A stretch of 62,934 nt of DNA, counting the filler, from Dicyema japonicum (taxonomy: Eukaryota > Animalia > Dicyemida), in the NCBI GenBank assembly GCA_011109175.1. It is 10 parts of 10 records of this genome, joined end to end, with 100 filler letters (N's around TTAATTAATTAA, not from the genome) between each part and the next. Parts side by side here need not be neighbours in the genome. Positions count along the whole stretch, not along the records: positions 34,530 to 38,456 come from RDEW01000324.1; 9 more parts are not named here. One strand, 5' to 3'. Made by a program: the position numbers and the translations under genes. Below the pieces are notes generated by a model that saw only the letters and a program-made list of their open reading frames with translations, had not been told where the DNA came from and searched no databases. Positions 34,430 through 39,391 of the stretch are shown here, in pieces (position 1 is the first letter of the stretch; each line of letters starts with the position of its first letter).

Positions 34430-35499
34430 NNNNNNNNNNNNNNNNNNNNNNNNNNNNNNNNNNNNNNNNNNNNTTAATTAATTAANNNNNNNNNNNNNNN
34501 NNNNNNNNNNNNNNNNNNNNNNNNNNNNNTGAAGTTGATGTTTTGTTCGTCTGTTCCTCCTCTCTTTTCCAAGAAGGACCAAGTTCTTCCATTTATTTGG
34601 AATAAGTGATTGTTTATGGACAGATTGGAAATAACAGTAATTGCGTAAATAACCATATTACCGATATGCTTCAATATAATTGGAGAAACACCATCAGAGT
34701 CACANCTTCACCCAGAAAGATTGGTTCCTGAGGACAATCTCAGACGGTTTAATTGAAAACGCAATTCCCCAAGCTTTAAATAGCCGCGTGGCGGCATGTG
34801 GTGTTTCGTGGCTAATTGGTTGAAGTTGATGTTTTGTTCGTCTGTTCCTCCTCTCTTTTCCAAGAAGGACCAAGTTCTTCCATTTATTTGGAATAAGTGA
34901 TTGTTTATGGACAGATTGGAAATAACAGTAATTGCGTAAATAACCATATTACCGATATGCTTCAATATAATTGGAGAAACACCATCAGAGTCACACGGAC
35001 GAAAAGGCATGCATAATAGTGTTCCTGATAATTTCCGGCGAAAATAAACCAGAACACGAGGTGGGGTTAGGTCTACGCGTCATAGGAACTTCAGTCTTTG
35101 TGAGTGACCGTGAGTGAGGTCACCTCCTCATGAGTGAGTTTCTTTCCTTTACAAATCGAGTGGTATCTGAATCAATTGCCTGGTTTATGGACTTTGAGGT
35201 TGTTCGAGACACGAACCGCCTATCAGCAAATAATAAAAAAATCAGTTAAGGAATTCACAACCACGTCAATAGAAGTATAAAAAAACTTGAGTGAAATTCT
35301 ATAAAGTTACAATCTACTAACAACTATAAATTATATCATATGATTATAATCACTAGTAAACTCTTCAGAAACACTAAGAAATTGTAGAATTCTTGGGAGA
35401 GTGTATTGATAGATCAGGTAAAATTATCGTTACGTCATGTTGTGTTTGGTACAGAGATTCAAAATCACGTTTTCCGAAGGAATTGAAAATAATATTTCC

Positions 35500-37540
35500 T
35501 CGAGGGTCAAAGATTGGAAGTAAAATCACTGTGTATGTTTGGGGTTTAAGTCAGAATATACATTGTTTTTCTGTACTTCTGACATATTGCCGTAAGCCAC
35601 CGATGACTCCATGTTGATCTTCCTGGTCTGAATCCGCTTTGACTTATGACAAGTATTGGTCAACTGAATTTGATATTCAATGTTGTAATCGACAATGTTT
35701 TTCGCAAAGTGGTCAAAAGCACGATCGGCCTGAGATTTTCAATTGGACCTGCAGGTTTCCAGATTTTTGTAAAGGAAGTAGAACTCCCATCGCGATATCA
35801 ATTGAGCAATGAGTCCTTAATATCTTGTTAATTATGAAAGTTCTTTTCTGCTAGCTGGGTTGGTGCGTATATTAACAACTCCCTACAAATATTGTCATAG
35901 CCAGCTGCTCTGTTGTTATTCAGGCGAAGGACTGCTTTGCGAATCTCGGAATCTGTGAACACATTATTAAGTGAACGAGGCTGTCCTTAGAATTGTGTGA
36001 GAGGAATAGTATCCTCCCGATTGAACTGCTTGCTAAAGTGTTGGGGTGTAAGTCCAATACCAAGTGAGCGAACTCATATTAAATTTTTAGATTGGTTTTA
36101 GCTGACCCGCGCTTGAGTAAACGCACAACCATAAACATTAAGTCCAATACCAAGTGAGCGAACTCATATTAAATTTTTAGATTGGTTTTAGCTTACCCGC
36201 GCTTGAGTAAACGCACAGCCATAAACATTTTTTCACCTGAATGTAATCTTTCCACTTCCAATACTCGTTGGTCCAAAAAGTCAGACCATGATCGGAGCAC
36301 ATTCTTCTTAATTTCGTGTTGGATTGTATTCCGCAATTTTTTTAATTCGGATTTTCGTTCAGGATCACAAGTTTCAATTTGAAGTCTTATATCTCGTTGA
36401 CGGATAGACAATTCATTGACTCTCGAGTTATATGCTTTTTTTGATCTTCCTTTCATAGTATTTTCGCGAATCCCAACTGTTTCNNNNNNNNNNNNNNNNN
36501 NNNNNNNNNNNNNNNNNNNNNNNNNNNNNNNNNNNNNNNNNNNNNNNNNNNNNNNNNNNNNNNNNNNNNNNNNNNNNNNNNNNNNNNNNNNNNNNNNNNN
36601 NNNNNNNNNNNNNNNNNNNNNNNNNNNNNNNNNNNNNNNNNNNNNNNNNNNNNNNNNNNNNNNNNNNNNNNNNNNNNNNNNNNNNNNNNNNNNNNNNNNN
36701 NNNNNNNNNNNNNNNNNNNNNNNNNNNNNNNNNNNNNNNNNNNNNNNNNNNNNNNNNNNNNNNNNNNNNNNNNNNNNNNNNNNNNNNNNNNNNTAATAAT
36801 CTCTTGTGCGACTGCTTGCACAAAATATAATCTATTTGATTGAATATTTTTTTTCTCTCCATTTTTGGTTGTTCTACAACCTACCCAGGTGGTCTTGTGT
36901 CGGGCGGCGTGCTGAAATGCCGTGTTGCACAAAAACAAATCGTAGGTATTACAAAAATCGATCATAAAATTTCCAGATGAATTTCGATATCTCATTCCGT
37001 GATTACCAATGCAACGTTCACCTCTGCGTTTAATTCCTTCCTTTGAATTCCAGTCTCCCGCAATAAAAATTAGCGTGGACGAGCAGAGTTGAGAGTATAC
37101 TTCCGATAAACTCATATAAAAATTATCAAAATCATCCATAGAAGTTGATAATTTTCCTGTGTGGTGGGCATACACATTTATGAAAGTCATAATCGATCTC
37201 TTATTACGTGATCCGATATTAAGTTGGATAATAGCAATTCGGTCTGTTACCCTCCATATTTTTTTTCCACAAGTGAGATGTGTATAGCAAAGCCCATCCC
37301 ATAATGACGGGAGTCGGATGGTAGTAGTATTAACCGGTAATTGTCATAGCATACATCTCGTTCCACTGTCACCTTCGTCTCTTGCAGACATGCCACACCG
37401 ATTTTGTATCTTTCTAGATCCGTACATAGAATGTTCTGTTTGATGAATTCCTCTGACATTGAAAGATGTAATGGAAAAAAGCGTAGAGTGGATTGATCGA
37501 AAATACGATAAGGCATTACAATGAGAGTGGTGTCAACCAA
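35500..37540 (-). mobile_element. RTE-clade LINE with APE endonuclease and RT start, degenerate, interrupted by gap
   Basis: CLQETK, INVYA, AGDWNS, NT.F.H..TTW, NQIDYIL, then RAAGYDNI..ELL, LRPIVLLTTLRK, QSGFRPGRST. Confidence 0.85.
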
Positions 37541-37654
37541 CTCAACTTAAATTAAAAGCTCTTTTAAAAATTTTTAAAAACAGAAATAATTATTTAATTT
37601 TTGTTGAATAACCAAAATGAAATAAAATAAAAGTAATGAAATACAAAATTAATT

Positions 37655-38357
37655 ATGGAATCCATAAAATGTTTGGTTGTTGGAGACAGGTAAATTAATA
37701 AAAAATAATTTAGTGCAGTCGGGAAAACAAGTCTCCTTCTTACGTATACAAAAACTTCCGTCAATACTTCATCCATTCCCAAATTGCATCCATCACTATT
37801 TATTTGTAGATTCGAAAACTACTCTCTCCAAATAATGACAAAAAAGGACAAAGCTACGTTCCCCGTTCAATTGGATTTGTGGGACACAGCAGCAGATGAC
37901 AATTACGACCGCCTCAGACCTATATCGTACGCCCAGACTGTTTTATAGTATAAAATATTCCTAGGACGTGTTCTTAGTGTGCTTTTCTGTGGTCATCCCC
38001 CAGTCTTTTCGGAACATTGAATCGAAGGTACCTTTGACGGAAAATGGTAGTGGCTTCCGGAAATCAACTTATACTGCCCCGAAGCGATATTTTTGATTGT
38101 GGGGACACAAAGCGATCTCCGAGACGACAAGGAAAAGATCCAAGAACTTGAGACATTGAACATGTCTCCTATAAAGTACAACGAAGGACAAGAACTGAAC
38201 AAACGAACAGGTTTGTAAAAATCCCATGATTGGAGGTGGAGTAAAGTACATTGAATGTTCATCCCTCACCACCTCTAATATTAAGGAGGTCTTTGAATAT
38301 TCCATCAAATCTGCTTTATCCCGAAAACTCAAAAAGAAGATCTGCAATGTGATATGA
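37655..38357 (+). CDS. Atypical Rac-family (Rho) small GTPase, six exons, CAAX end CNVI
   Basis: Introns 37690-37713, 37786-37809 (GC-AG), 37940-37964, 38028-38050, 38211-38235; spliced ORF intact: IKCLVVGDSAVGKT..FENY..WDTAADDNYDRLRPISY..VGTQSDLRDD..YIECSS..KKKICNVI. Confidence 0.92.
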
Positions 38358-39391
38358 CGTCATAAATTAATTAAAATGCGTTTCCTGGTGAGGCGTTGTT
38401 TTCTAAGAAAATTTATAATTATTTGTGTCTTCCCTTTCTAACACATTATTGTGCTTNNNNNNNNNNNNNNNNNNNNNNNNNNNNNNNNNNNNNNNNNNNN
38501 TTAATTAATTAANNNNNNNNNNNNNNNNNNNNNNNNNNNNNNNNNNNNNNNNNNNNGGTCATTGATAAAACTTCAAGTATACAATTTCCAAATTGACTTT
38601 AATGGTATATCCACTTATTTTAAACTAAATTTAATTTAAGTTAGCCGTATTCAGCCGATTCCGGCCATTGGCGATTCTGTTGATCAAATTCCCCTGTCCG
38701 TAACGAGCTCTCAATCTCGAGAAAATCATTTCCGGCTATTTTAACGACTTGCGAAGTTCAACATAAGGTAGTTAATTTAAAACTAACCAATTCACTTGTT
38801 ATCCGCTAAGGATTAACCTCCTCCTTTAACCTACACCACTCCTTTATTCTCTCCAACTCAGTTGAGACTCTTTTTTAACTTTCCACATTATCTAATGACT
38901 TGCTTCAATTATGAGGATGCATGTTGCTAATCATCTTCGAATAAAGAATCTCGAATAGGGATGTTAGTCGTCGTCTGTGGAAATCGTTTAGGTTTTCAGT
39001 GATTAGTACGAGTTCTTCATTGTGCAATAAAGGGACGTCACCACCTCAACGCAAAGACCGTCACCACCCTAACCGATCTACAAAATTAGTTAATTTATTT
39101 TATTGAACCAGAAAACCACCGTCATAGCCAAAAAAACAAGAATTCAGGTGATCCCAGCCTCCCTCAGCAGTTCTCGCAATTTAATTTTATAATTTCTAAT
39201 TGAAATTTTCATTTCCTTTAATCTAGAAATATAATTACATTGTACAAATGATTATAAATTTGGCTACATTTCAAAATTAATTTGTTTATTTCATGAAACA
39301 AAAAAAATAATAAATTGTATTTAGTTTGGCAAAAAAATAATTTTTTTGCATTCCACTCTATCGTTTAAAATCCAAAAAATCCAAATGAATG

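Follow-up and report, generated by a model that had tools for sequence, protein, structure and literature searches.

Rho-family proteins that can no longer hydrolyze GTP are best known in vertebrates, where RhoH and Rnd are thought to be constitutively “on” and controlled by their expression. RhoH carries the P-loop GDSAVGKT, which is also that of the protein described here; in both RhoH and Rnd, T35 and the glycine of DxxG are present, and the active, effector-binding form is taken up. A residue other than glycine at position 12 accounts for the GTPase deficiency of RhoH and Rnd, and GAPs have no effect on RhoH (PMC13236570). In RhoU/V, a tyrosine stands at the equivalent of F28, and nucleotide exchange is fast, as in F28 mutants of Rac1 and Cdc42 (PMC13236570). 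The pseudoGTPases, among them the p190RhoGAP domains, CENP-M and Rnd, have the G-domain fold but have lost catalytic motifs and work by partner binding, not by cycling (PMC5593906, PMC10211241). Finally, the laboratory changes Y32F, T35S and G60A in H-Ras each push Ras-GTP into state 1, an open, effector-incompetent form in which GTP is bound, the contact of Thr35 with the γ-phosphate is lost, effectors bind poorly and GTPase activity is drastically reduced (PMC4867591).

The window is a stretch of 62,934 nucleotides from Dicyema japonicum (assembly GCA_011109175.1), made of 10 parts joined with filler letters. The piece that we examined (34530–38456, from RDEW01000324.1) carries a Rac-like gene on the plus strand at 37655–38357, whose six exons join into 582 nt, that is, 193 codons and a TGA, with no internal stop on translation. 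Exon 1 (37655–37689, 35 nt) encodes M1 to D11 plus two bases of codon 12 (AG, completed by T to a Ser codon, G12S), and its N terminus, MESIKCLVVGD, aligns with MQAIKCVVVGD of Rac. Exon 2 (37714–37785, 72 nt) supplies the rest of the P-loop, SAVGKT, and a remodeled switch I, KTSVNTSSIPK (F28V, Y32S, T35K). Exon 3 (37810–37939, 130 nt) encodes FENYS, a 4-residue hairpin insertion (37850–37861), W56, DTAAD (37883–37897; G60A, Q61D) and the conserved NYDRLRPISYAQT; exon 4 (37965–38027, 63 nt) encodes DVFLVCFSVVIPQSFRNIESK and has Cdc42 as its top match; and exon 5 (38051–38210, 160 nt) contains the G4 motif TQSD (38105–38116) and the Rho insert region DKEKIQELETLNM. Exon 6 (38236–38357, 122 nt) closes the frame with the G5 motif SSL (38259–38267), the polybasic RKLKKK and CAAX box CNVI (38322–38354) and the stop codon (38355–38357). 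All of these features lie on the plus strand.

The introns between them, also on the plus strand, are very short: intron 1 (37690–37713) and intron 2 (37786–37809) are 24 nt each and in phase 2, intron 3 (37940–37964) is 25 nt and in phase 0, intron 4 (38028–38050) is 23 nt and in phase 0, and intron 5 (38211–38235) is 25 nt and in phase 1. Animal introns of less than 30 bp have been reported only in myxobolid myxozoans and D. japonicum, and in both groups the splice signals are cut down to about GTa...AG (PMC13644364). Introns 1, 3, 4 and 5 have GT..AG ends; intron 2 is GC..AG, with the non-canonical donor GCATCC. An earlier reading of the DNA from its sequence alone (the sequence-only reading) had described an uninterrupted spliced reading frame, and the frame is indeed open over its 193 codons, but one of its five junctions departs from the canonical form. 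Two other GT donors for intron 2, at 37743 and 37760, were considered and rejected, as both break the frame. Retention of intron 2 would also leave the frame open, adding eight residues (HPSLFICR) after residue 36, within switch I, which the alignment to PDB chains passes over; spliced and intron-2-retaining messages alike are predicted to encode a full-length protein. A stop-free, in-frame intron 2 is expected by chance about one time in five on a rough estimate, which is not significant alone.

Intron positions bear directly on the descent of the gene. Among the best 150 of the 583 proteins recovered in our large protein search, many arise from gene callers having read through Rac exons into introns; with these fragments aligned to Patella Rac1, we counted the points at which Rac similarity starts and ends within them. 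The breakpoints peak at residues 13 (14 fragments), 37 (36), 75 (28), 96 (26) and 150 (3), and the peaks coincide with all five introns of the Rac-like gene, introns 1 and 2 with the starts of similarity at residues 13 and 37 and introns 3, 4 and 5 with the ends at 75, 96 and 150, in a comparison that covers Rac genes only. The exon lengths agree as well: those of human RAC1, 35, 72, 118, 63 and 160 nt, are matched throughout except for the 12-nt insertion in exon 3. Because its five introns lie at Rac positions, the gene descends from an animal-type Rac-like gene, and an origin as a retrocopy is ruled out. More generally, such read-through fragments in a protein library mark eukaryotic exon limits, and the tally recovered the Rac introns without recourse to annotation.

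Sequence comparison leads to the same branch of the family. Database searches were run exon by exon, and the joined translation was used for local alignment, counts and a tree against fetched proteins. The Pfam Ras family (PF00071) matches the exon 2–3 piece at 31.4 bits, against a cut-off of 21.6, and in a local phmmer comparison with Patella Rac1, the joined model reaches 207 bits. Rho-family chains are the top structure matches for every exon piece, with Rac and Cdc42 as the closest solved relatives throughout. For the exon 2–3 piece, Rac scores 43.5 bits, Cdc42 35, RhoG 34.9 and RhoA 34.4; for exon 4, Rac scores 21.2 and Cdc42 23.6; for exon 5, Rac 40.9, TC10 37.1 and Cdc42 36.2; and for exon 6, a Rho1 22.2, Cdc42 21.7 and Rac 20.1. 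Exon 5 aligns ungapped with Rac2 residues 97–147, including the Rho insert (DKEKIQELETLNM against DKDTIEKLKEKKL), which the protein thus possesses. The sequence-only reading had taken the gene to be intact, interrupted by introns and derived from Rac, and the per-exon matches and the Pfam assignment agree with its place in the Rac/Cdc42 clade; by descent, the protein is a Rho-family member of that branch, yet not a canonical switch.

Its further preference for Rac over Cdc42 held up in part. The summed per-exon scores (~126 bits for Rac versus ~117 for Cdc42), W56 and the five Rac intron positions favor Rac, but exons 4 and 6 score higher with Cdc42, the stretch DVFLVCFSVV in exon 4 is identical in Cdc42, and the G4 motif is of Cdc42 type. 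Human Cdc42 has TQID at G4, and Rac has T/CKxD (bioRxiv 10.1101/2019.12.24.888222); the K116Q change of the protein is not to be read as a lesion, because TQxD is the normal state of Cdc42. A maximum likelihood tree places the model in a polytomy, with a terminal branch of 3.03 changes per site, where the median is 0.1; its references are Racs, since the word search with the Rac-like protein (P0038) returned only Racs, and Cdc42, RhoA, RhoH and Rnd lie outside it. Support for Rac over Cdc42 is thus modest. With respect to the vertebrate atypical proteins, the best 60 structure matches listed per exon include no Rnd chain, the top ones being all Rac or Cdc42, and show no sign of orthology to RhoH or Rnd. 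Because the best matches are to Rac and not to RhoH or Rnd, the atypical state appears to have arisen independently of theirs.

We read the states of individual motifs from alignments to Rac2, Rac1 and a set of 86 full-length Racs that spans sponges, bilaterians, fungi and amoebae. The alignment runs without gaps through residue 48, beyond the residue 40 that had been claimed, and is then interrupted by the 4-residue insertion, which falls in the β2–β3 hairpin. All six replacements that the sequence-only reading had listed, G12S, F28V, Y32S, T35K, G60A and Q61D, are real, the last two converting DTAGQ to DTAAD, and the features that it had called intact (GKT, the T-x-x-D motif of G4 as TQSD, the polybasic tail and the CAAX box) are all present. 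Its summary that almost every catalytic or switch residue is replaced captures these changes but misses that divergence is global and extends beyond catalytic residues; E62D, D63N, H103L, H104Y and A159S are further changes. Retained are G10, K16, T17, W56, D57, Y64–P69, T115, D118, S158, the Rho insert, RKLKKK and CNVI. The protein therefore has the nucleotide motifs of the Rho family at G1 (GDSAVGKT), G4 (TQSD) and G5 (SSL), but lacks Thr35 of G2 (T35K) and the DxxG of G3 (DTAA for DTAG). The positions altered are 100% conserved in the 86 Racs, and those of the fetched proteins of the Rho family that bear a WDT motif include no real substitution at position 60 and five with a residue other than Gln at 61.

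The likenesses to described systems are correspondingly mixed. With canonical Rac1 and Rac2 the protein shares W56, the YDRLRP switch II helix, the Rho insert, the polybasic-CAAX tail and the five intron positions, and with Cdc42 it shares TQxD and DVFLVCFSVV. It differs from canonical Racs in G12S, Y32S, T35K, G60A and Q61D, in the near-total replacement of switch I, in the hairpin insertion, in its 48% identity and in a branch ~30 times longer. With the vertebrate RhoH and Rnd1–3 it has in common a membrane anchor and also a non-glycine residue at 12 and an altered G3/switch II, the two features that deprive RhoH of normal GTPase activity and of its response to GAPs (PMC13236570). A residue other than Gly at 12 and other than Gln at 61, with the nucleotide motifs kept, characterizes the GTPase-deficient atypical Rho proteins (PMC13236570), and the protein has S12 and D61. 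Unlike RhoH and Rnd, it has lost T35 and the DxxG glycine, and Y32 as well. These are the positions altered in the H-Ras mutants Y32F, T35S and G60A, but whereas those are single laboratory changes, the Rac-like protein carries all three naturally, together with the changes at G12 and Q61, and with less conservative residues (Ser, Lys and Ala). At the level of sequence it also qualifies as a pseudoGTPase, as G12, T35, G60 and Q61 are replaced and the core substitutions are conservative. In contrast to the pseudoGTPases named above, it is a free-standing, CAAX-bearing protein that keeps G1, G4 and G5 and, judging from these motifs, probably binds nucleotide.

The reading that we favor, with confidence only slightly better than even, is that the gene is a lineage-specific, strongly diverged paralogue of the Rac/Cdc42 branch that acts as a non-switching pseudo-GTPase, in an animal with ultra-short introns. 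The G-domain fold appears to be retained, and the motifs for phosphate and guanine binding (GDSAVGKT, D57, TQSD, SSL), the Rho insert and the polybasic-CAAX anchor are present. Lost, by alignment, are G12 and Q61, which serve hydrolysis and GAP action, and T35 and G60, the two sensors of the γ-phosphate, along with Y32. A protein of this kind is probably related to a molecular switch but does not itself switch, and several properties would follow. First, it would be prenylated and seated at the membrane through its polybasic-CAAX tail. Second, it would still bind guanine nucleotide through G1, G4 and G5, probably loosely and with fast exchange owing to F28V; this prediction is drawn from motifs, and F28V, A159S and T35K could abolish binding. 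Third, GTP hydrolysis would be impossible; the sequence-only reading had likewise held that the hydrolysis residues are gone and the nucleotide motifs and membrane anchor kept, and the alignments support it. Fourth, the closed, effector-binding state 2 would be out of reach, and the protein would not signal through CRIB-type effectors.

The fourth property separates the protein from RhoH and Rnd. Because Y32, T35 and G60 are lost together, and each of the corresponding H-Ras changes favors state 1, the analogy predicts a hydrolysis-dead protein that is barred from the effector-binding state, rather than one that is constitutively active. The sequence-only reading had offered a constitutively loaded or decoy Rho protein; the decoy fits better, but constitutive loading or activity fits poorly with the loss of these three residues. 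What such a protein might do instead is suggested by what it keeps. GEFs and GDI bind Rac at the switch II helix and W56, and because both are well kept, sequestration of regulators is a reasonable proposal: the protein may use its conserved switch II helix and the surface of its core to bind or sequester GEFs, and possibly GDI, or may serve as a scaffold. The fuller version, in which selection keeps a permanent state-1 Rac in a simplified parasite, either as a GEF/GDI sink or as a nucleotide-loaded, non-switching scaffold, is one that we put forward tentatively and hold to be doubtful. Such a state-1 mode would be one that has not been described for free-standing Rho proteins.

How far the gene has been under selection can be judged from the pattern of its divergence. 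Its product is identical to Patella Rac1 at 93 of 193 positions (48%), and of the 120 positions that are invariant among the 86 Racs (conserved in at least 95%), 47 are changed. The changes are concentrated in the switches: residues 25–48 have lost 17 of their 24 invariant positions, and residues 25–48 and 60–63 together 21 of 28, against 26 of 92 elsewhere (Fisher, odds ratio 7.6, p = 1.5e-5). The character of the replacements differs as well. Outside the switches, their mean BLOSUM62 score is +0.35, compared with −0.67 ± 0.29 when codons are changed at random by one base, and none of 2000 simulations reaches +0.35; inside the switches, the mean is −0.14, indistinguishable from the single-mutation null (P = 0.15). 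Switch I thus seems to have been either freed from constraint or rebuilt, and part of the switch loss could reflect relaxed constraint on a branch ~30 times longer than those of other Racs.

Near-random replacement in switch I is also what would be seen if a duplicated Rac/Cdc42 gene had gone out of use and the locus were a young or slowly decaying pseudogene, its frame still open by chance. We consider this alternative unlikely, although it survives better than the others. Several further observations are in its favor: intron 2 has a splice donor mutated to GC, repeats are common around the gene, where the remnant of a decayed retroelement lies 115 nt upstream, and the exon 2–3 search of 1.84 billion representative proteins turned up no expressed or annotated copy. 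The weak GC donor, and likewise the retroelement remnant 115 nt away in a repeat-rich, gapped piece, count against the reading that we favor. The third observation carries little weight, since the representative library is clustered at 50% identity, the protein is 48–50% identical to Racs, and a full-length copy could sit within a Rac cluster; a missing transcript-derived copy says little about expression.

Against decay stands, above all, the frame itself, which is open for 193 codons without a frameshift in six exons despite ~52% amino acid divergence. When neutral substitution was simulated, without indels, to 39–55% amino acid divergence, the frame stayed open in 0.3% and 0% of 600 runs. 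The conservative core replacements, the canonical splice sites of four of the five introns and the retention of the CAAX box, P-loop, G4 and switch II helix are also hard to reconcile with long disuse, as is the composition of the exons (41% GC, GC3 48%), which is unlike that of the introns (28%). A pseudogene would fit solely as the very recent death of a divergent gene that had long been functional. The sequence-only reading had held that the gene is still under selection, and the open frame and conservative core do argue for selection at the protein level; but the argument is indirect. These data indirectly suggest that fold and core were kept by selection through most of the divergence, with which a recent gene death is also compatible.

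The intron positions and retained motifs also speak for a second alternative, that this is the parasite's own Rac/Cdc42 orthologue, evolving fast and still working as a regulated switch by means of compensating changes, with no separate canonical copy in the genome. All five introns are placed as in Rac genes, Rac and Cdc42 are the best matches of every exon, and W56, the switch II helix, the Rho insert and the CAAX box are in place. Moreover, reduced gene sets and very fast sequence evolution are known in dicyemids and myxozoans (PMC6736024, PMC13644364). The difficulty lies with the residues that a switch needs. G12, T35, G60 and Q61 are invariant in 86 of 86 Racs, from sponges to fungi and amoebae, and no switching small GTPase is known to lack T35 and G60 together, which counts against this alternative. 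Single changes in H-Ras at Y32, T35 or G60 already cripple the switch (PMC4867591), and the terminal branch is 3.0 against the median of 0.1. On this evidence we consider a regulated orthologue improbable, somewhat more so than a pseudogene.

That the gene model or the sequence is an artefact, whether of mis-assembly, of errors in sequencing or of a frame open by chance, is very improbable, since, although the piece contains an N gap and a perfect 175-nt duplicate and one splice donor is non-canonical, each exon on its own aligns with Rho-family proteins, with order and frame as expected, the exon lengths (35, 72, 130, 63 and 160 nt) and intron positions all agree with Rac genes, ~100 amino acid differences are too many for read errors, and a random 193-codon frame of the same composition would be open with a probability of 1.4e-6.

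The favored reading, a non-switching paralogue, would make this single gene in a fast-evolving parasite genome a more extreme form of the atypical or pseudo Rho GTPase. If GTP sensing has truly been lost independently here, the Rac scaffold can serve a job that involves neither hydrolysis nor switching, and the gene would be a natural experiment on the uses of the state-1 conformation. Should it prove an unexpressed relic, it would be no more than an oddity in a genome that evolves fast. The locus also illustrates cleanly how ancient intron positions can be kept while the introns themselves shrink, here to 23–25 nt.

Relatives that share the unusual features were sought in several collections. 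The phmmer search with the exon 2–3 piece against the 1.84 billion representatives gave 583 hits, with no self hit and none closer than ordinary Racs, and DTAAD is absent from these hits; the best, at 54.6 bits, is a duplicated plant-type fragment, and ordinary Racs score ~43 bits at 52–54% identity. A word search with the 75-amino acid exon 2–3 piece, which has only proteins of 41–131 amino acids within reach, found no match; a scan of JGI metagenomes found nothing beyond G-domains at 33–36% identity; and an exact look-up of two open reading frames of the window found none on record. Odd Rho-family proteins do occur in public data. Several Rac-like proteins have a residue other than Gln at 61 (R, P, E, N or M), and among P0005 (786 amino acids), P0088, P0007, P0051, P0104 and P0159 there is one with three tandem Rho domains, which carry GDTEVGKS/DTAGK, GDSKAGKT and DTAGLEDNYRHRR. 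Because such proteins exist, atypical Rho proteins are not rare beyond vertebrates.

The surroundings of the gene are rich in repeats. GC content is 37.1% in the piece; in the D. japonicum genome it is 36.7%, repeats, including numerous copies of LINE ORF2, account for 49%, and gaps for 4.1% (PMC6736024), and in the myxozoan Henneguya salminicola GC content is 29% (PMC13644364). Taken with the ultra-short introns, these values would point to a dicyemid or to a myxobolid other than Henneguya. A ciliate source, suggested by the 25-nt introns and the TGA stop, was set aside in view of the retroelement, the GC content of 37% and the animal pattern of Rac introns. Antisense and flanking open reading frames in the piece match no Pfam family, and no part of the piece resembles human sequence. 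At the left edge of the piece, two 175-nt copies (34530–34704 and 34821–34995) are 100% identical and 291 nt apart, with a single N beside them at 34706, and could be either a tandem duplication or an assembly artefact. On the minus strand, a decayed non-LTR retroelement lies at 36795–37540 and continues to ~35828, its endonuclease-like open reading frames broken by stops and by an N gap (36485–36793); a 90-nt unit duplicated head-to-tail at 98% identity (36049–36228) lies inside this remnant. The 5′ end of the element faces the start codon of the Rac-like gene head-to-head, with 115 nt between them that by eye are very AT-rich. The assignment is weakly supported (Pfam Exo_endo_phos_2, E = 0.005); the open reading frame has no PDB match and is 44% identical to an anonymous ENA metagenome protein. 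A retroelement-like protein (P0270) is borne by two eukaryote-like ENA contigs, L001 (13171–14796) and L002 (3361–4986), both of which also carry a NACHT-domain gene and the first an integrase (rve) fragment.
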